A stretch of 16,261 bases of DNA from Selaginella moellendorffii. Its lineage: Eukaryota > Plantae > Lycopodiophyta. The stretch spans positions 1-16,261 of the forward strand of contig NW_003314305.1 of NCBI RefSeq assembly GCF_000143415.4. The letters are read 5' to 3'. The notes beneath the pieces are model-generated. The model did no database searches. It was given only the letters and a program-made list of their open reading frames with translations, and was not told the DNA's origin. Below are positions 1 to 16,261 of the stretch, piece after piece (the first letter of the stretch is position 1; every line of letters begins with the position of its first letter). The position numbers and the translations under genes are program-made.

Positions 1-436
1 AACCCTAAACCCTAAACCCTAAACCCTAAACCCTAAACCCTAAACCTAAACCCTAAACCCTAAACCCTAAACCCTAAACCCTAAACCTAAACCCTAAACC
101 TAAACCCTAAACCCTAAACCCTAAAACCCTAAACCCTAAACCCTAAACCCTAAACCCTAAACCCTAAAACCCTAAACCCTAAACCCTAAACCCTAAACCC
201 TAAACCCTAAACCCTAAACGCGCCTAAACCCTAAACCCTAAACCCTAAACCCTAAACCCTAAACCCTAAACCCTAAACCCTAAACCCTAAACCCTAAACC
301 CTAAACCCTAAACCCTAAACCCTAAAACCCTAAACCCTAAACCCTAAACCCTAAACCCTAAACCCTAAACCCTAAACCCTAAACCCTAAACCCTAAACCC
401 TAAACCCTAAACCCTAAACCCTAAACCCTAAACCCT
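1..436 (+). repeat. Terminal telomeric array, plant-type (CCCTAAA)n / (TTTAGGG)n
   Basis: About 60 tandem CCCTAAA units from base 1, with the C-rich strand on +, as expected at a left chromosome end. There are a few CCTAAA/CCCTAAAA variants and one CGCGCCTAAA variant (219-228). The junction to non-telomeric sequence is sharp, at ...AAACCCT|TCATC. Confidence 0.98.
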
Positions 437-479
437 TCATCATGTCCTAAGTGGCCATTGGTCCTTCGCAAAAAACCGG

Positions 480-702
480 ATTCGGTCTCGGACTCGATCT
501 CGGACTCGATCTCGGACCCGATCTCAGACCCGACCTCGAACTCGACCTTGGACTCGGTCTTGGACCCGATTTCGGATCTCGAACTCGGTCTCGAACTCGG
601 TCTCGAACTTGGTCCCCGAGTCAGCCTTGAACTCAATTTCGGACTCTATCTCGAACTCGGTCTCCGAGTCGATCTTGGACTCGATCTTCGACTTGGTCCC
701 AT
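480..702. repeat. Degenerate 6/12-mer minisatellite (consensus ~TCGGACTCGATC)
   Basis: Repeating TCGGACTCGATC / TCGAACTCGGTC / TTGGACTCGGTC units. These account for the low-complexity ORFs 421..636, 458..709 and 524..730. Confidence 0.85.
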
Positions 703-940
703 CCGATGAATTCTTTGTCAATTTGGTCATGCTTTCAGGGTTCCTTTAGCCTACGACACTTTGGCGAGTTGGTTCCTTACAGGCACTTGATGTGGGGAAC
801 ACCCTAAACAGGTGATTCTGAAGTTCTATCAAACTCACTCCCCAGAGTGATCACATGCTGGACACAGTCCCCAAACCTTGCCTCCCACTTGGTTTCAGCA
901 AGACTCCCACCATATGGATAAGCTACCTTGGACTTGTCCA

Positions 941-1263
941 AAGCTGCCTCTTGCAAACTCGGAGTGGAATATTCCTGGAATATTCTGATGCTTTGAAATA
1001 TTTTTTGAGGTTAGCTATTAAGCATGATGAGGAACAATTAGGACGTGCTGCATGGCTGATATCCATCACCATCACCATTCACAATATACTGCTATGAATA
1101 AGCTACCTCTTGCAAAGTCGGAGTGGAATATTCCTGGAATATTCTGATGCTTGGAAATAACTTTTGAGGTTGGCTATTAAACATGATAAGGAACAATTAG
1201 GACGTGCTGCATGGCTGATATCCATCACCATCACCGTCCACAATATACTGCTATGAATAAGCT
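941..1263. repeat. Tandem duplication, 159-bp unit x2
   Basis: AAGCT(G/A)CCTCTTGCAAA(C/G)TCGGAGTGGAATATTCC... starts at 941 and at 1100, and AAGCT recurs at 1259. The two copies are highly similar. Confidence 0.92.
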
Positions 1264-1295
1264 TCACACCACTAAGCTTGTTTATTTCCTATTTC

Positions 1296-1580
1296 AGTCT
1301 TTGAAATTTTCAACTTTTTTGAAATTTCAATTGATTATTATATCTTGTGCCTTGCACAGTGATGTCATTGAAGCTCACATCTATTCTCTACAAACCAAAT
1401 TTGAGGGAAATATACTGAGCTAATTAAAATCACCACCACCTATTCTCTGAAATTTTTCTGAAATTTCAAGGGACTATCACATCTTGTGCCTTGCACAAAG
1501 ATGTCATTAAAACTCATATTTTATTTTCTACAAACCAAAATTTGTAGAAAATAAACTCATAATAATAGCAATCAATACCA
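1296..1580. repeat. Older diverged tandem duplication, ~139-bp unit x2
   Basis: ATCTTGTGCCTTGCACA..GATGTCATT occurs at 1342 and 1481. TGAAATTTCAA and TCTACAAACCAAA are present in both copies. Boundaries are approximate. Confidence 0.8.
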
Positions 1581-1726
1581 CTATCATAATATATAAGATA
1601 AGTGGCTAGTGACAACCAAGTCTGTGAGGCTGTTCCTCCAAGCTTGCCTGCTCACCACAAGATCTTTGAAATTCTAAAACAGTTGGATATTTTCAAAGCT
1701 TCTTGAATATTCTTAAGGCATCTGGG

Positions 1727-1734
1727 TATAAATA
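1727..1734 (+). promoter_or_regulatory. TATA box upstream of the hammerhead (putative pseudo-LTR promoter)
   Basis: TATAAATA lies about 25 nt upstream of the CTGATGA core. Function is inferred from position only. Confidence 0.5.
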
Positions 1735-1747
1735 GAGGAAAAAGAGG

Positions 1748-1800
1748 GACTACACCCAGCTGATGAGTCCCAAAAAGGACGAAACCGGTCTCGGGTTGTC
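1748..1800 (+). ncRNA. Minimal type I hammerhead ribozyme (Penelope-like)
   Basis: Core CTGATGA at 1760-1766. Stem II is GTCC(1767-70)-CAAAAA-GGAC(1777-80), followed by GAAA 1781-84. Stem III is the palindrome ACCGGT 1784-89. The cleavage triplet is GTC, with a predicted cut after 1790. Stem I pairs GAC-tac-ACCC-AG with TC-GGGT-t-GTC (one G.U and one A-C mismatch next to the core). Confidence 0.9.
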
Positions 1801-1950
1801 ATGCCAATGTATTTCCTTTCTCTTTAGTGAATTTTTCATTATAAATTTTCTCTAGTTTTTCCTCTTATCTCAAATTGCCATAGCCGATCTCTAGCATTCT
1901 TGAGTTCCACTGGATCAAGCAATGTGGAGTGCTTTTGGCTAATCGCAATT

Positions 1951-2007
1951 CCACAAAACCCAAAACCCAAAACCCTAAAAACCGGTAAACCCTAAAAACC
2001 CTAAACC
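1951..2007 (+). repeat. Interstitial degenerate telomeric tract 1
   Basis: CCACAAAA CCCAAAA CCCAAAA CCCTAAAAA CCGGTAAA CCCTAAAAA CCCTAAA CC, in the same polarity as the terminal array. It abuts the truncated gag. Confidence 0.85.
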
Positions 2008-2008
2008 G

Positions 2009-2635
2009 GTTACCATATGTTGCTGCTGGAGCTGCAGCTGCAACATTCTGCGACGACATCCAGGCCTATTCCCATGTTGCTGCGTGCACCACTACTGCGT
2101 TCAAATCTGCTGGTCTCTGCACCTTCACGTGGAACCCGATCTCAAATGGCAACCCATTCAAGAACCAGCAAACTTGGTCGTCAGCAGTAGGCTGTGGATC
2201 TTTCCTCGCGAGCAGCCTCTTGTAGTGAAGAACGTAATTTTGCAATGTCTCTCCAAGTAACAATTGAATTGAATTTAGCTCGTCGCTGATACGCTACTTG
2301 AATCCCATAGGACAGAAAGCATTGAGAAATGCTGTTTTGAGGTCTGCCCAGGCTGCAAAGGCTGCTGCTGCATTCGCCTGACCATACCACTCTGCTGCTG
2401 CTCCCAGCAACGTCGCCGGAAACAAACAGACTCTCACAGCATCTGTCTGCTCCTGATTTGCTGTGCTGACATTTTCAAAAGCAGTTACGTGAGCGTCTAG
2501 ATTGTTAGTCTGTGTAAACGTTGGATACTTCATCCTCGCGTTGGCAGGCTGTGCCATTTGAGGATTTACTGCTTGAGGTGTGGGCGAGGCTGGTTCAAAT
2601 GGCCCCCACTTCTCCCAACTCAAACTTGAGTCCAA
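2009..2635 (-). pseudogene. gag: Ty3/Gypsy gag (Retrotrans_gag-like), two in-frame stops, 3'-truncated
   Basis: ORFs 2294..2635, 2066..2263 and 1865..2059 share one frame: KYPTF..LDAHVTAFE..LFPATLLGAAAEWY..WADLKTAFLNAF..GETLQNYVLHYKRL..WFLNGLP. The translation runs into telomeric repeats after AAPAATYGNR. Confidence 0.9.
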
Positions 2636-2880
2636 AGTCCTTGGACTAGTTTTAGGACTGGTTTCAAGCGAGTTCTATAACAGTCTCCTCGCTGCTTGTT
2701 CAGAACGGCCTCGATTCTGCTCTACCCTCCTAGTAGAAAAATCTAGAAAATTATCCCAGTCCGGGGATCTACCCGCCAGACCAAGAACCAACTGCGGCAA
2801 AGGATGCTTACTGCAGATGCCCGCAGATGACCAGCCTTTTCCTCAGGCCTGGTTTACTGCACAGTTACTGTGACTAAGCC

Positions 2881-2898
2881 CTCCCAGCTAACACACCA
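2881..2898 (-). promoter_or_regulatory. Primer-binding site of the minus-strand LTR element
   Basis: The minus strand reads ...CTTGACA TTTTT TGGTGTGTTAGCTGGGAG: LTR end CA, a T spacer, then an 18-mer starting TGG. The tRNA identity was not assigned. Confidence 0.7.
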
Positions 2899-2903
2899 AA
2901 AAA

Positions 2904-3554
2904 TGTCAAGAAAAATACATGACAACAAAGGAAGACTGGAAAGACTCCCCTAGGGCTTGTATTTCAGCAGTAACTACAGATCACTCGTACTGTGGGCCTG
3001 CAATAACTCTTCTATGATCACGGTGATGGGATCTCGACGGCCTATAGGAGGTCTACCATCTTCAAGCAGAAAGAACTCAAGAATATGAGATAGAAAATAA
3101 GAACTATAAAATAACTGAATGGCCGTACTTAATTTTCAAACTACCAAAAACTTAAACACCAACCAATGGCTGAGACTTTTCCAACTAATAACTCTTCATC
3201 CACAACTTCGATCGACTTGATTTTACCACCATGTAACTTCCCTTGATAAGATCTTCAACTTCATAGAAAACAACTTCTTCAAATTCTCACTTCTGAAATC
3301 TGTCACTTTTTCTCTCTCTAGTTAGAATATTCCTAGGAAGCTTCTTCAGCGAGCTTCTTCATTTTTCACCTTTTTCTAGCTCAGAAATACGTCAGTACTC
3401 ACAAAAGCAACCACAAGTGTGAAAATACAACCATATATACACTTATTGAGAGGGCGGTATGCCCAGTTTTTGTATTAGTCCCATTGGGACATGGGGAATG
3501 TACAAACACATTCAATGATCTCGCCAGATAACAGCACCGTGGGGTGTCTTTGAC
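2904..3554 (-). mobile_element. 5' LTR (~650 bp) of the minus-strand Ty3/Gypsy element
   Basis: Inverted termini TGTCAA(2904)...TTGAC(3554), with the expected terminal A replaced by telomeric C. It is adjacent to the PBS and has an internal minus-strand TATATA near 3434-3439. Confidence 0.78.
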
Positions 3555-3591
3555 CCTAAACACCTAAATGCGCCTAAACCCTAAGCCCTAA
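3554..3591 (+). repeat. Interstitial degenerate telomeric tract 2
   Basis: CCCTAAA CACCTAAA TGCGCCTAAA CCCTAAG CCCTAA, in the same polarity as the terminal array. Confidence 0.85.
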
Positions 3592-3719
3592 TGCAAATGA
3601 TTATGTTGTGGGTGGTGTTCTCATGCAAGATGATCATCCTATTGCATATGAGAGCAAGATATTTAACCCAATAGAGCAGTGATACTCTACATATGAAAAA
3701 GGAAGTGTTAGGAATTATA
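3590..3719 (+). pseudogene. Ty3/Gypsy RNase H fragment (chromovirus-like)
   Basis: Manual translation gives NANDYVVGGVLMQDDHPIAYESKIFNPIEQ*YSTYEK/EVLGII, which matches the DASxxAVGGVLxQ..PIAYES..L..AE.RY.TYEKELLAI motif. It starts immediately after telomeric tract 2. Confidence 0.88.
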
Positions 3720-3951
3720 AATTAAAGTGAGTTTTTTTAGCCACAACATAGTCATTTGCATCCACAACCACCATATATGGTTTGCTTGGATCCACAATTG
3801 GGTGCTTGAGATCAGTTACCCTTCCTAACCGCCCAGCATTTGCACTAGCACAAACATAAGTTCGTACAAAACTTTAAAAGAGAAAACTGCCTTTATCCCA
3901 TGTCCTATTTTAGTTCTCCATGCGTTTCACGATAGGGTTTCACTTAGCAAA

Positions 3952-4138
3952 ATGGAGAAGGTGCAGGCACGAATCGAGCTTCTTGAGCCACAGATCCAAG
4001 CGGCTGGGAAATCTTTTCTCTCTGCCCTTCAGAGTGGCAATCAATCTCTGGCGGAATATTGGCTGAAGGAGAAAGAGCGGCTGCAGAAGAAGGAAGAGCG
4101 GCTGTCGGAGGAAAAACTCGTCCTCCTCAGAAGTAATG
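3952..4138 (+). CDS. Exon 1 of the CR-like gene: alpha-helical/coiled-coil header
   Basis: AAAATGG start context, the peptide MEKVQARIELLE...EYWLKEKERLQKKEERLSEEKLVLL, and a canonical donor GTAAGT at 4139 (phase 1). Confidence 0.72.
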
Positions 4139-4514
4139 GTAAGTGATTTGGGGCGTTTTGCTGTGTTGTGGATATGTGTGGCTATGGCTGCTTTCCGTTC
4201 TAGTGGTCCAGTCCTAGTGCGCCATGAAAGTGGCAGATGTCAGCCATGATTTCGTCACTGTTGGATTTGGTCTTGCTTGTGGCTGGTTATTCACGGCAAT
4301 CTGTTTGGTATGGTATCATTAATCTTGCGTTCTACTAAGAGTTTCTCTCTGGGCCCCCTTGTTTGTTCCCTTGCAGCATGTAGATCTTCTGCTGCTTTTC
4401 TGTTGTCGTTTAAGCCAGATGTTTCTTGCGTTTCCTCTGCTTAAAATCCCCTCGCTTCTCACTGCAGACAGCCCTTGTGTCTTTTCGTTCATGTAACTAG
4501 CGATTTGTTTCCAG

Positions 4515-5704
4515 GTCCGTCTTTTGTTTTACCTGAGCTAACTTCGAGCGACATCGCAAGTTTGGATTGCTTTCTGGAGGGCAAGGCTGGCATACCCCAC
4601 TATCGTGACACGAATATTCCGCGATTTGGTGACAGGCCGAGCTTGTTGCTGCATGGCCTACTAGCACACGACACTGAAGACTTCGACAAGTTCGTGAGCA
4701 GGGGTAGCAGGTTTTTATTGGTGCCAGGAACAAGTGGAGCAGGAAAAACCAGGACTCTCTATGCTCACCTGGCGAAGAACTTCGGTTTTTACTTCATTTC
4801 CAATGACCTGGGGAATGGCGGGTCTGCAGACTTGAGGGAGGTGATTGGTATACTGGCAACGTATCTGGGCGCGGATCAAGTTAAGAACTATACTATAACT
4901 ACCTTTATGGTCACTGTGCTGCTGCTGGTCAGGATAGTGGTCTTCCACTACTGCAAAGGAAAGGATATAACTCCTGAGAAGTGGCTCATGTTACAGGTCG
5001 GGTGCCAGAGGCTGGAACAGGACAGGAAGCCATTGAACTTGGATCCTTTTGCTGCTTGCACTCGGCTGGCTCTCGGTAGATATGGGCCTGTCCTCCATGG
5101 CTCGTTAGTGGGGATTGCAGGTTTACTGGGTCAGGCCAAAATTGCCCTTTCAGAGTTGCTGGGAGGACAGCAGTTACCCCTGTTGGTAGTTGATGAGGCA
5201 CAGGAACTGGTTAAGCTGTATGCCGGAAAGTTCCGTACAGATCTTGAACCCTTCAAGGACCGACCATTGGCAAAGCCAGTGTTGGAAACTTTGCTCTACC
5301 CAGGCAACGAATCTCCAATTCATCATGTTGTATATGCTGGAACGGGCTTTCTTCTGAGCTTCAGCCGTTTGGAATCGAACAGCCCGGTGGGAAAACCGCT
5401 CGTCAAAGATGACGTGTACGAAGGTCTTGGTAGCTGGACAGATTGGAAGCAGATGGCAGCCTATTCCTGTTGTATTCTGGGGACAGCTTGGGATGCTGAA
5501 GCTCAGGAGACAGTGAAGAATGAGGTATTTCCCTATTTCAGGGGTCGGTTTCGCCCATTTGCGACATTGCTCGAGGAGGTGATTAGGAGGGGCAAGCACA
5601 TCCGATGGGTTTGGAACGACGTTTTTATAGGACTGACAGCTCGCCAAGGAATTCCAGGGATACAAAAGAGCTACTACAGGATTCTTGCAGAGGTAGCAAG
5701 GTAA
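4515..5704 (+). CDS. CR-type P-loop NTPase region
   Basis: An open frame of about 400 codons with Walker A GTSGAGKT, GSADL, Walker B VVDEAQ, YAGTG and GRFRPFA motifs. Confidence 0.85.
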
Positions 5705-6585
5705 CCGTGCAGTACTTCTACTTTGGGTGGTCATTCACGTGTCCAGTTTATGGTGATGAGCAGGAGAATGATTTACCTTCGACTCTTTTGGAGGTTGCCA
5801 TAGGAAGGGTCTACGGAAAGCAAATGGTTATAGTTGACGAGCCTCTTATGCTGGTGGCGATGCACAACTACTTTTTGGACGAAAAGAAGATCACCGGAAA
5901 TATGCTGGACACCCTTTATGCTCTGAACAATCCTTCCACAGGCAACTGGTGGGAGCATCTGTTTCCGCTGGAGATAAAGGATTTGTGGGAAAAGCACGAG
6001 GGGAAACTGGATCAGTTTGAGCTGTTTCATGATTTGGACCTGACACAGAATTTGGAGGCTTTGAAGAGCAAGAAGAGTCGTATTATGGAAGGCTCTATCT
6101 TTTACTTGGATGGGGCGCCAATGCCACCGGTGGTGATCTATAAGGCGGACAAAAACTACACTTGCCATGACTATTTGGCAAGTGATGTGCCTGGTTGCAT
6201 GTTTTTGGTGGCTGAGCATGCTGCAGGTTGTGACCTCATGTTCAGAATTCAGTTTGAGGACCATACCATCATATGGGTTAGTGTGCAACTCAAGCTGAGG
6301 AAGATCTTGTCCAATGCTTATGATGCTGTTTGCAAGGCAGAACCATCACCAAAATATGCTTGCAGGGGAGATATGTTGTGCCTGTTGGTTGCATATCCAG
6401 CATCACTGAACCATCCACCAGTGGAGAAACAGAAGATTGATGGGCAGACTAGATGTGTGGTTACAGTAGACAGGAAGAACGCCCGCAAGTTTATCTCAGT
6501 GGACCATTTGAAGAACCTTGATATTTTATCTGGTAAGAATAAAATACTAGTAAAAGTAATAAATAAAAGTAATGGTTTTACATAA
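5701..6585 (+). CDS. CR-type C-terminal region with restriction-endonuclease-fold (PD-(D/E)xK, QxK variant) domain
   Basis: IVDEPL, GNWWEHL, AGCDLMF and VSVQLKL motifs, in the order typical of CR NTPase-REase proteins. A possible further donor G|GTAAGA near 6533 precedes the AT-rich tail. Confidence 0.75.
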   Translation, partial: VTVQYFYFGWSFTCPVYGDEQENDLPSTLLEVAIGRVYGKQMVIVDEPLMLVAMHNYFLDEKKITGNMLDTLYALNNPSTGNWWEHLFPLEIKDLWEKHEGKLDQFELFHDLDLTQNLEALKSKKSRIMEGSIFYLDGAPMPPVVIYKADKNYTCHDYLASDVPGCMFLVAEHAAGCDLMFRIQFEDHTIIWVSVQLKLRKILSNAYDAVCKAEPSPKYACRGDMLCLLVAYPASLNHPPVEKQKIDGQTRCVVTVDRKNARKFISVDHLKNLDILSGKNKILVKVINKSNGFT

Positions 6586-7009
6586 TTAGAATAAACTTCG
6601 GTGCTAAGCTGTTCTAATGTAATGTTTGTCCATATATAAAGGCAGTCAGATCTAGCTCAAAATATGATGCTGTTTGCAAGTCAGATCTAGACCAAAATAT
6701 GCTTGCAGGGGAGATATGTTGTGCCTGTTGGTTGCATATCCAGCATCACTGAACCATCCACCAGTGGAGAAACAGAAGATTGATGGGCAGACTAGATGTG
6801 TGGTTACAGTAGACAGGAAGAACGCCCGCAAGTTTATCTCAGTGGACCATTTGAAGAACCTTGATATTTTATCTGGTAAGAATAAAATACTAGTAAAAGT
6901 AATAAATAAAAGTAATGGTTTTACATAATTAGAATAAACTTCGGTGCTAAGCTGTTCTAATGTAATGTTTGTCCATAACTTTAATAATATAAAGGCAGTC
7001 AGATCTAGC
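6348..7009. repeat. Near-identical tandem duplication of the CR gene 3' end (offset 343 bp)
   Basis: ACCAAAATATGCTTGCAGGGG...GGCAGTCAGATCTAGC occurs at 6348-6656 and 6691-7009. Copy 2 has an extra ACTTTAATAA. A 34-bp filler lies at 6657-6690. Confidence 0.95.
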
Positions 7010-7109
7010 CAATGGCATGTTGTTGTTATGGGAAAAGAAGGAAATTTATTGTTGGCTCCTACCAAAATAATGTTTAGGGATAATGTTTTGCTTACTTTTC
7101 TCAATTGCA

Positions 7110-7385
7110 TGGTCTCGGCCTTGGTCTCGGTCTTAGTCTCGGTCTCGGTCTTGGCCTCAGACTCCATTTCAATCTTGGCCTCAGTCTCGGCCTCGGACTC
7201 CATCTCAGGTCCATCTTAGACTCCATCTCGGGTTCATCTCGGGTCCATCTTAGATTCCATCTCGAACTCCATCTCGGGTCCATCTTAGGTCCATCTTAGA
7301 CTCCATCTCGGACTCCATCTGGGTCCATCTCAGACTCCATCTTTGACTCCATTTTAAGTCCATTTTGGACTCCATTTCAGACTCA
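7110..7385. repeat. Degenerate 6/12-mer minisatellite (GTCTCG then ~TCGGACTCCATC / TCGGGTCCATCT)
   Basis: Visible 6/12-bp periodicity. The unit is related to the 480-702 array. Confidence 0.85.
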
Positions 7386-7700
7386 TTTACTACTTGCTTC
7401 ATGCTCGTCCCTTGAGCTCTTCGTTGGGAATTTAACTCCCACTCTTGAATATCCAAGTCGGAGCTTTTAGTCCAAATGTGTTACACTCATTTGGTTTCCG
7501 CTTTAGCCACTACCACATGGCACCCTTTCTGCTCCACTTTAGGGCTTAGAGATTTGTGTCTCACAATAATCTTCTACTGATGGTAAGTAAATACTCAAAA
7601 GCTGTACACTTTATAGCATGAGGATGATGGGGAAGATCATTTCAATCTAAGGAAGAAGCTTTTGATTGTTGTTCGTGAACTCAATTGTGTGTAGAACAAG

Positions 7701-8345
7701 ATGGAGCTTGAGGACACTCATGCATTAATTTTAATGTTGGAAGGCATGTTTTGTGGTGGTTTAGTGTGGATATTACTAGATAGTGGGAGCAATAATAACT
7801 TTGTTTCAACAAAGTTTGTTGAGGAGCACAATCTAGTGACACGAGGAATTCTGCCATACAATAGTGGAAGGTGCTACTACCCTTGCTTAGCATTTTGATG
7901 CTTGTGTAGAGGGGTTGGAAGAGTTGGTTAGTAAAACCATACTTGTGAAGATTTTTTATCTCATATCCATTGTGTGGATCTTATTCTTGGGATGCCATGG
8001 TTGGTGAAGGTGGATCTAAAGATAAAGTGGAGTATTAAGCATGTCTCACTAATACAATAGCATTAAAGATGTGTGGTTAAGAGAGGGAATTTAGCCTATA
8101 GTTGTTATACTCTTCACTACATCTTTGAAGTGGGCTTATCATAATGAAAAAGCACTTTCTAGTTACTTGCTTTTTGTTTGTGACTTGGGGAATCAAGGTA
8201 CGTGTGGGGGAGAGGCAATCATATGGGTTGTAATTAAAGAGTTTTTTGATGCTTTTCCGCTAAACTTCTTTATAGGTTGCCTTCATGACAAGGTGTGGAG
8301 CATGGGATTAAGGTATAGCCAAAGACACAACCAATTTAGCAACAT
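7701..8345 (+). pseudogene. Decayed Ty3/Gypsy (chromovirus-like) aspartic protease and pre-RT linker
   Basis: ILLDSGSNNNFVS (~7770-7808), DLILGMPWLVKVDLKIKW (~7977-8030), IKEFFDAFP and GVEHGI, with many stops and frameshifts. Confidence 0.85.
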
Positions 8346-13333: not shown

Positions 13334-13765
13334 TGCAATTTATGAAGAACAACAATTAACTCAAGATAACGTAGGCAAAACACAAATTCAAGAAACTTAC
13401 CTCAACACTCAAGTTGAGAAGACTCAGCAAATTGAATGTACAAATAGAAACCAGACCCAATCAAGATCCGGGAAAGAGATCTTTGACAAAAGAATCGAGA
13501 AGTGAAAAAGGAAGAGGTAGTAAAAGAGAAATTATAACAACAACAGCAACAAATTTTAGAAACAATTTTAAACAAGTACGACAAAGAAGATAAAAAAATT
13601 CAAGTTGCCGAGTCGAGCAAACCAGTCAAAGATAACAAAGAACTGAATATCGAAGACGCCCCAGAGTTTGAGGCATTCGAAGAAGCAGAATACACAGCAC
13701 CAGAGTTTTACTCAAATCCGGACTCACCAGAACAACAACTCAACCAACAAAGTTTACAACCACCT

Positions 13766-14983
13766 ATGGCAATCATCAACCCGATGAAAACAATTGGAAG
13801 CATGATTACATATCCAATTTTCATAGGAAGTAAGTCAGAAGATTCAGAATTACATGTAAAGCAATTCAACCAAATTGTCAAGATGAACAATCAAGAACAA
13901 CACTAGCCATACTTTTCCCATACACACTTAAAGGAAAAGCTCTTGAGTGGTATCATACACTAGAGGATTCTGTACCACATGATGACAAAATTAAACAATT
14001 CAAAGAACAATTCCTAGCCGAAGGAACACTGGAGGAGCATTATGAGCAAATTAAAAATATAAAACAGCGACCAAAGGAAGGAATTCAAAACTATACTAGA
14101 CGATTCAAATTACATACAAAGAAATGTAAAGATCTCATCACCGACAAAGGCAAGAGTTTGTCTTATATACAAAGATTACGAGAAGCCTATGGCAACATGA
14201 TCGCATTGGCTGATACACCTGATGAAGAAAGTGTTGATTCACTATCTCAAGGAATCTTAAAACTTGAGAAATGGTTTAAGCAGTTCACTAAAGGTGAATC
14301 TTCTCATGTTAATGATGACTCAGATGATGAAGAGGAGGAAATACTAATCAAGACCAAAAAGAAATAGACATAGGGAAAAGACATTAGACATGTATTGAAG
14401 AAGTTAGCTTCAACAGAACTTAAACAAGGAGTCTTTTGTACAAAATGCAAAAATGAAGGACATTCTGTTTCAGATTGTAAATTCCAATTACCCAAATGTC
14501 AGATTTGTGATAGAGAAGGACATATAGCCAAGAATTATCGATATAGAAATACCACTGAAGTTTCAAGAGTGGAAAATGTTCAACGAGGAACACCACGACA
14601 AAATTATCAAGGAAACAACAACCAAGAACAAAGACCACCAAGAAATTATTACTACCAAGATAATCAACAATATAATCAAGGATATAATTGTGGATATAAT
14701 TCCCCACAAAATCAAAACTATAGTTAAGGACAAAATGATTATAGAGGCAATTACAATCAACAACGATATAATGGACACCAAAACAATTATCAACATCCAC
14801 AAGGGAACAACTACAACCAAAACCAACAAAGGCAATATAACAATTACAACAATCAAGCATCGCAACAAAATTATCAACCAAGACAAAATCAACCACAAGA
14901 AAATCAAATTCAACAACAATACAATCCACAAAACCAAAGAATCAATCAAGATCCTACTGGAAGACCATCAGCAGCACGAGTAA
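13766..14983 (+). pseudogene. gag: gag with two CCHC zinc knuckles and N/Q/Y-rich tail
   Basis: YPIFIGSKSEDSELHVKQF..LKGKALEWY..IKQRPKEGIQNYTRRF, then CTKCKNEGHSVSDC (14437-14478) and CQICDREGHIAKNY (14497-14538, last Cys lost). Several stops and frameshifts are present, and the frame may extend upstream. Confidence 0.9.
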
Positions 14984-15469
14984 TTCAAGTAGAAGTTGAT
15001 GTAGAAGATGAAGCACAACTAAGGACTGAAGAACCAGAAGTTCTGGCAATCACAAGAACACAATATGAATGTCAACAACCTGATAAATATGGAGAACAAG
15101 ATGAAAGTGATCATGCATTAGAAATCAAGAATACCGAGTGGAAAAAGAGTAAGAAAATACTTAACACCATTCAACAAGAGCTTCAAAACAAAGATCCCAA
15201 AATTATTAATGATCAAATATACAATCAAGACGACCAAACTCAAGTATTAAGCTTTACTCAAGAAGAGCATACAACCATTGCCGAGCACATACTACATCAG
15301 GGAATTACTTTGACCTTACAACAAATATTGCAAATAGCACCATATATGAAAGACTAAATCTTAAAGATATGTACTTGAAGGATCCTTGAAGCTTGCACAC
15401 AAGAAAAACACCAATCTCAACCAGCACAACAAGAACAAGTTGAAAGAATCCAACCCGGTGATTATGATG

Positions 15470-15810
15470 ATAATGTACCTTGTATCAACGTACACATCGG
15501 CAAAAATCATATTGAAAGAGCTATCCTTGATGGAGGTTCTGGGGTTAATATCATCGAATATGCACTATGCAAAGCTTTAGGATTGGGCAATATACAAACT
15601 GCACCATTCAATGTACGCATGGCTGATCAAAGAGTTGTTAGACTAGCAGGCATCATCTGTGATGTCTCTATGACAGTAAAAAAGGACATAAATTTAAAGT
15701 TAACTTTGTTGTGTTAAAAATGCCAATTGAAGAATCTTCTTATGAAATCTTGTTAGGCAGACCTTGGCTTAACAAAGCTGTTTCTACACAGTATTGGATG
15801 GAACATGAGA
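15470..15810 (+). pseudogene. Retropepsin aspartic protease of the plus-strand element
   Basis: AILDGGSGVNII (~15520-15555), FNVRMADQRVV and, after a frameshift, YEILLGRPWL (~15741-15770). Confidence 0.9.
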
Positions 15811-16154
15811 TATGTATCCAATCCTAACAAGGACAAACTAAAATATCAACATTGACAAGTAAAAAAATCTCAAGAAGTTTCCGACCAACATAAGTTCAAG
15901 AATACAATTGGCAAGAAGGTTTAGACGATCTTGAAGAAGCTAAGTTATTTGAAGCATATTCTGAACTTAAGGCAATTCAAGAACTTGACCTCAACAAGAT
16001 ACTTCCTGTAACCAAGTGTCAAGACTATGAAGATTCAAAACAACCCAATTTAAAGAAGATACATACAACAAAAACCACCATACAAAAAGCAAGACTAGCG
16101 ATACAACCCAAACAATTACAAATTATAGAATATCACCTAGATATACAAAACGAA

Positions 16155-16206
16155 CCAGCACTCACTCACCATTCAAATTAGTGAGTGAATGGTGAGTGAG
16201 TGCTGG
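16155..16206. repeat. Perfect 21-bp inverted repeat with 10-nt loop
   Basis: CCAGCACTCACTCACCATTCA (16155-16175), loop AATTAGTGAG, then TGAATGGTGAGTGAGTGCTGG (16186-16206). Confidence 0.95.
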
Positions 16207-16261
16207 AATCATCGTCAATCTGCAAAAACGTATCTGGAGCACTATGAAATCCAAAAGCCCG

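Follow-up and report, generated by a model that had tools for sequence, protein, structure and literature searches.

To our knowledge, Selaginella is the sole land plant in which telomere-attaching Penelope-like elements (PLEs), retroelements thought to stand close to the ancestor of telomerase, have been documented. Telomeric PLEs are on record for Selaginella moellendorffii (Gladyshev and Arkhipova 2007, as cited in PMC12477314 and PMC8557442), and the terminal repeats of Selaginella PLEs carry canonical type I hammerhead ribozymes, which are drawn beside the Schistosoma and human motifs in PMC4209133. In the accounts given in PMC6431247 and PMC8557442, the 3' end of endonuclease (EN)-deficient PLEs and Terminons bears a hammerhead and reverse-complement telomeric repeats, and the 5' end points toward the telomere; the tail repeats are believed to anneal to the G-rich overhang, with the chromosome end priming reverse transcription. 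For the Athena elements and Terminons of bdelloid rotifers (Arkhipova et al. 2017), PMC6431247 describes a 3' end at which the hammerhead is followed by C-rich reverse-complement telomeric repeats, and copies that lie at telomeres, are 5'-truncated and co-oriented, and can form chains. An earlier note on the DNA analysed here had suggested that it may belong to an undescribed family in a plant. This is not supported, because both PLEs (PMC12477314 and PMC8557442) and their hammerheads (PMC4209133) have already been described for S. moellendorffii; the kind of element is known and is not new.

The locus compared with these systems lies at a chromosome end of the same species. The window, by which we mean the whole 16,261-nt stretch of DNA that was analysed, corresponds to GL377609.1:1-16261 of the S. 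moellendorffii v1 assembly (GCA_000143415.2), the first 3000 nt being 100% identical; the coordinates of the features are collected in Table 1. Positions 782-2008 probably represent the 3'-terminal region of one of the telomere-attaching PLEs of S. moellendorffii that lack an endonuclease. In this reading the module opens with a 3' body that is non-coding, continues with a type I hammerhead and a terminal hairpin, and closes with a C-rich tail whose complement is the telomeric G-strand. The unit begins 346 nt inward of the terminal array and shares its strand with the C-rich repeats; the hammerhead is situated 1.3 kb inward of the chromosome end, and ribozyme, hairpin and tail are all co-oriented with the array at 1-436.

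Like the published Selaginella PLEs, the unit is found at a chromosome end with its 5' end telomere-ward; its 3' end carries short telomeric repeats in reverse complement, and its terminal region holds a Schistosoma-like type I hammerhead. Unlike them, the window copy has neither RT nor ORF1, and its 5' side, rather than being capped by a telomere, is cut off by a different repeat. The earlier note had proposed that polarity and anatomy fit telomere-attaching EN-deficient PLEs, and the match to the published 3' end bears this out. It had also seen no remnant of an RT; in agreement with this, a frame check and a Pfam scan of 437-2059 revealed no RT, GIY-YIG or other Pfam domain and no long ORF. 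With no RT or long ORF in this interval, the assignment to the PLEs is based on the 3' module and on published accounts. A copy that is 5'-truncated or interrupted would be expected to lack the RT; the present one cannot be placed by its RT.

Table 1. Positions and supporting evidence for features at the telomeric end of the window
Feature	Position	Strand	Evidence
Terminal telomere array (CCCTAAA)n, C-rich strand	1..436	+	TRF: AACCCTA period 7, 61.9 copies, 95% matches
Fragment of hyper-abundant repeat, context outside the ribozyme unit	437..781	-	Contig depth; heterogeneous flanks at 781
Non-coding upstream body of ribozyme-bearing unit, 5' side interrupted at 781/782	782..1753	+	Stops, Pfam, TRF, contigs
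Internal single telomeric unit ACCCTAAAC	800..808	+	Sequence
TATAAATA octamer, TATA-like, 20 nt upstream of ribozyme	1727..1734	+	Sequence
Type I hammerhead, RF00163 Hammerhead_1	1754..1796	+	Rfam: 38.4 bits (gathering 34), E ~1e-6, model 1-45 of 45
AT-rich spacer, ribozyme to hairpin, 76 nt	1797..1872	+	Sequence, fold
Imperfect terminal hairpin, 78 nt, directly before tail	1873..1950	+	MFE fold; arms 1873-1881 / 1942-1950
Degenerate C-strand telomeric tail, 58 nt	1951..2008	+	TRF 1954-2007; BLAST 80-87% to terminal array
Truncated, degenerate LTR-retrotransposon gag	2009..2635	-	PF03732 Retrotrans_gag, E 2e-4, ORF 2294-2632

The intact hammerhead with a palindromic ACCGGT stem III that had been reported in the earlier note was recovered by Rfam above the gathering threshold. 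It was the single Rfam match in the 16-kb window, and nothing else reached E<=1 within 1-8000. All elements of the core are in place, with CUGAUGA at 1760-1766, GAAA at 1781-1784 and C17 of the RF00163 alignment corresponding to C1790; cleavage is predicted after C1790, the position that had been proposed before. Helix II is formed by GUCC/GGAC (4 bp) with a CAAAAA loop, and helix I by ACCCAG/UCGGGU (6 positions, one A-C mismatch); beyond a UAC internal loop the latter can continue with GAC/GUC, so that the structure spans 1748-1800. The UAC internal loop and the CAAAAA loop are reminiscent of the tertiary-contact elements found in canonical type I ribozymes. Lunse et al. reportedly found in 2017 that minimal type I hammerheads in the pseudo-LTRs of canonical PLEs cleave as dimers. 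In the window, helix III consists of the palindrome ACCGGU alone, with 1-2 bp possible in cis, and in predicted folds a homodimer with an intermolecular ACCGGU helix was slightly favoured over two monomers (-37.1 versus 2 x -17.1, or -34.2, kcal/mol). The dimer fold agrees with the dimeric cleavage described for PLE-type minimal hammerheads in PMC4209133 and PMC7761336.

The motif is a near-perfect match to the Schistosoma-type consensus and fits the description of Selaginella PLE hammerheads given in PMC4209133. When compared by description, the published Selaginella hammerheads have a 'typical' helix III, whereas that of the window is the ACCGGU palindrome only. The unit extends for 212 nt beyond the hammerhead, which thus lies within the 3'-terminal region. 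Judged on its sequence, it is a genuine ribozyme motif of the PLE type. A full-text literature search with the letters of the ribozyme returned no matching paper.

Hammerheads with a shared motif were sought in metagenomes using a pattern in which the core, the helix II stem and ACCGGTC were fixed, and nine loci were found. The ORFs of three of these loci were scanned by Pfam, and two of the three (L002 and L008) encode RVT_1 and GIY-YIG and are therefore canonical PLEs. Their minimal type I hammerheads are identical to that of the window in the catalytic core, the helix II stem and the palindromic ACCGGUC helix III, but loop 2 and helix I differ; furthermore, canonical PLEs with RT and GIY-YIG integrate internally by means of their endonuclease and carry no telomeric tail. 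None of the metagenomic loci with the hammerhead pattern had a telomeric tail after the ribozyme, and none was a Selaginella relative. For covariation, related hammerheads were aligned on the canonical structure, and compensatory changes were seen in five of the six pairs of helix I, in an alignment of few sequences whose helices II and III were predetermined by the search pattern. On the canonical structure 83% of cells overall were paired, compared with 25-48% in a slid register; the pairs were counted on this structure as the RNAalifold consensus failed to recover the canonical hammerhead. As a separate observation, L005 (metagenome contig TBL_comb48_EPIDRAFT_1049144) and L004 carry hammerheads with the same ACCGGTC helix III. 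Four such copies are present on one 1.5-kb contig, spaced 185 and 607 nt apart, and cleavage as dimers would be possible in this tandem layout.

Plants are known to harbor hammerhead-bearing LTR retrozymes (Cervera et al. 2016; PMC5680766), which have in common with the window a non-coding, ribozyme-bearing retroelement sequence in a plant. As described in PMC5680766, their own features are type III hammerheads in two LTRs, a PBS, a PPT and circular RNAs, whereas the window has a telomeric tail, lacks a pair of LTRs and contains a single ribozyme, of type I. It is thus highly improbable that the locus is a plant LTR retrozyme, or that it holds a chance hammerhead-like motif in ordinary subtelomeric DNA. 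The former was rejected on the Rfam assignment to type I rather than type III, the single ribozyme in 16 kb and the lack of a flanking direct-repeat pair; retrozyme-like LTRs, which the earlier note had raised as an alternative setting for the motif, were accordingly not found around it. A chance origin is excluded by the E value of ~1e-6.

Between the ribozyme and the tail, which starts ~155 nt downstream of it, lie the spacer and the hairpin. The fold of 1740-2010 gave z = -2.46, with 2 of 200 shuffles folding equally well. In this respect the window differs from the Athena/Terminon elements, in which the rotifer repeats follow immediately after the ribozyme, whereas here a 76-nt spacer and a 78-nt hairpin are placed between the two. 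Terminons are also giant multi-ORF units with the Athena RT, in contrast to the 1.2-kb, non-coding unit of the window with its plant CCCTAAA-type repeat. That a CCCTAAA-like tract is present on the C-rich strand, as the earlier note had stated, was confirmed by TRF and BLAST, which place it at 1951-2008 on the same strand as the array at 1-436. The tail reads as three CCCAAAA-type units followed by CCCTAAAAA, CCGGTAAA, CCCTAAAAA and CCCTAAACC, the most canonical units being the last ones, which adjoin the gag. Sequence variants within the true terminal array are CCTAAA, CCCTAAAA and CGCGCC; the absence of the three-fold CCCAAAA variant from among these favours an element-encoded tail. Taken together, the unit order suggests that the tail is encoded by the element and that its last one to three units may derive from the old telomere. 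Two further ACCGGT motifs are present in the tail, and 1784-1797 could pair with 1997-2010; as one of these arms spans the tail-gag junction, the complementarity was taken as coincidence.

The gag match on the other side of this junction is real but weak. A second gag ORF is found at 2066-2260(-), and the window copy is damaged by a frameshift near 2263-2294 and a stop at 2066. Contigs of public runs that represent other copies of the retrotransposon (X19, X1) align from 2009 on, with unrelated letters before. The gag is therefore cut at 2008/2009, and the fusion of the tract to a broken gag, a further claim of the earlier note, holds (PF03732, E 2e-4). This gag would have been the former chromosome end to which the tail was joined.

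A PLE-derived sequence could also have reached this position passively, as part of a subtelomeric patchwork assembled through recombination or duplication between chromosome ends or through end-joining, in which case 1951-2008 would be an eroded telomere that healed the gag. The end is a mosaic: besides the abundant repeat (437-781) it contains another telomere-like tract (3553-3591) and nested pieces of retrotransposons, and it has a breakpoint at 3445 when compared with other copies of a repeat. Copies with ~99% identity are likewise expected from subtelomeric duplication. Even so, we consider this origin unlikely: the tract begins exactly where the hairpin ends, and its distal part shows a pattern (CCCAAAA x3) unlike the variants seen in the true array. 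The attachment model requires the very strand and order observed, whereas end-joining could give either orientation, and a duplication from another end merely relocates the attachment event.

The second telomere-like tract is co-oriented; a rare (C/T)GCGCC variant occurs both in it and at 213-241 of the terminal array (93% over 29 nt). The tract continues into part of a Ty3-type RNase H (…DYVVGGVLMQDDHPIAYES…). When the window is compared with other copies of a multi-copy repeat (17 contigs over position 3505), its breakpoint is at 3445 and not at 3552.

The earlier note had suggested that part or all of 437-2007 may be an RNA-templated extension of the chromosome end. For 782-2008(+) this is probable, in that the segment fits PLE polarity, but 437-781(-) is excluded as a separate, hyper-abundant repeat. 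The summed contig depth of the latter is ~8e5 (~3000x), compared with 258 for the contig of a single-copy gene, and the end of the repeat family is sharp at 781, where ~60 contigs have heterogeneous loose ends beyond. The repeat includes a 12-nt array (477-693) and a minus-strand ATG ORF, 524..730(-), which encodes an acidic S/E/K-rich repeat; a Pfam scan of 437-781 matched no family. A looser array of the same type as the 12-nt array is seen at 7111-7384. Since 437-781 is a different repeat that ends sharply at 781, the present telomere (436/437) does not cap the ribozyme unit but the 437-781 fragment, and the unit on its 5' side adjoins the abundant repeat at 781/782 without a direct telomeric-repeat cap.

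The body of the unit upstream of the ribozyme is AT-rich, with stops throughout all three plus-strand frames. Two internal duplications were identified, one at 941-1263 (159 bp x2, 94% identity) and one at 1312-1557 (~139 bp x2, 81%). In the reads, another copy joins 1381 to 1684, which shows that the duplicated region varies in length among copies. The number of telomeric units also varies between copies or strains, since the covering contigs of two runs (X1, X12) have one additional ACCCTAA behind 800. The two longest plus-strand ORFs of the unit had no exact record match, and a homology search with the 70-aa ORF at 1211-1420 gave no candidate. Coverage of 1739-1924 was provided by one low-depth contig only, from a run presumed to be RNA. 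The octamer TATAAATA is present at 1727-1734 as had been noted, and is only a possible promoter element; on its own, a TATA-like octamer is not significant in DNA of 36% GC.

Copy number was approached using contigs from an independent DNA run, made in 2024 on the same organism, with the contig of the adjacent single-copy gene (depth 258) as reference. A contig covering 782-950 had a depth of 907 and one covering 1234-1675 a depth of 1393, both at ~99% identity. In the same run, 1684-1854 was found on a separate contig that represents a diverged copy, and position 1873 was covered by one contig only, at a depth of 1845. The unit contigs are thus 3.5-7 times as deep as the contig of the single-copy gene next to them; as contig depth does not equal copy number, the claim is limited to several copies. 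The unit 782-2008 is multi-copy, with several near-identical copies, and the single-copy status that would have spoken against the earlier note is thereby rejected. The 782-950 contig continues for 84 further letters upstream of 782 without a match to the window, from which it follows that the unit is longer in another copy.

These properties bear on a further reading, in which 782-2008, or the ~280-nt core of ribozyme, hairpin and tail with its own TATA-like promoter (1727), is a non-coding, non-autonomous family that uses the PLE RT in trans. Only the 3' docking module would then be in common with the autonomous Selaginella PLE, a relation like that of a SINE to a LINE. A body (782-1753) that is wholly non-coding and AT-rich, with internal tandem duplications, would fit such a family, as would the existence of several near-identical copies and the position of TATAAATA 20 nt upstream of the ribozyme. 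In addition, the summed contig depth of the bin containing the ribozyme exceeds that of the upstream body, depth again not being equal to copy number. An element with an RT and a long non-coding 3' UTR would look identical, however, if it had been truncated at the 5' side or interrupted as here at 781/782, and the 84 extra letters upstream of 782 in another copy indicate a unit that is longer elsewhere. On balance a trans-mobilised family seems unlikely, though it is the less improbable of the alternatives. If it were real, a non-autonomous 'telomeric retrozyme/SINE' would be hijacking the Selaginella PLE reverse transcriptase to extend chromosome ends; we know of no such class described in plants. 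The locus would represent something new only if its non-coding body turned out to be a family of its own that is mobilised in trans.

Under the preferred reading, that of a telomere-attaching PLE 3' module, the arrangement may have arisen in several steps. A break inside the gag of an LTR retrotransposon would have left a short telomere or merely a G-rich overhang, to which the tail of the PLE RNA could anneal; the reverse transcriptase of the element would then have been primed from the chromosomal 3' OH. Copying of the RNA would place the sense strand on the C-rich strand with its 5' end outward, as it is now found. The unrelated abundant repeat would later have come to adjoin at 781/782, by insertion or by joining, after which the end may have broken anew inside this repeat and telomerase added the array at 1-436. 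By analogy with Athena and Terminons, the hammerhead might serve as a 3'-terminal fold that presents the tail, as a processing site of longer transcripts, or as both.

Such an end invites comparison with the HeT-A/TART/TAHRE elements of Drosophila, which are likewise retroelement sequences added to chromosome ends in a fixed orientation. Those elements are non-LTR retrotransposons with poly(A) tails in a host without telomerase, whereas in the window telomerase repeats coexist with the element and docking would proceed via complementarity between tail and overhang. The locus offers a clean, readable example of a 3' docking module joined to a healed break, and indicates that such ends are repeatedly rebuilt by insertion, new break and new cap. 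Its contribution is an annotated copy together with anatomical detail, notably the 155-nt hairpin-bearing spacer between ribozyme and tail.

Further inward, the window contains an intron-containing gene, SELMODRAFT_419778 (window 3950-6980), which starts 3952 nt from the start of GL377609.1 and is ~3.5 kb inward of the inner end of the telomere (436); the ORF at 4475-5701 has 99% identity to it. The gene product showed a weak AAA/P-loop match (PF13401) below threshold, and in a search of 5.8 billion proteins its sole match at E<=1e-5 was itself. The 3' end of the gene falls within a 343-bp tandem duplication (6319-6977, 98% identity). At the far end of the window, 13560-16261(+) is the gag-protease part of an LTR retrotransposon, interrupted by stops, with a CCHC zinc knuckle at ~14430-14480 and a Q/N-rich low-complexity stretch at 14570-14950.
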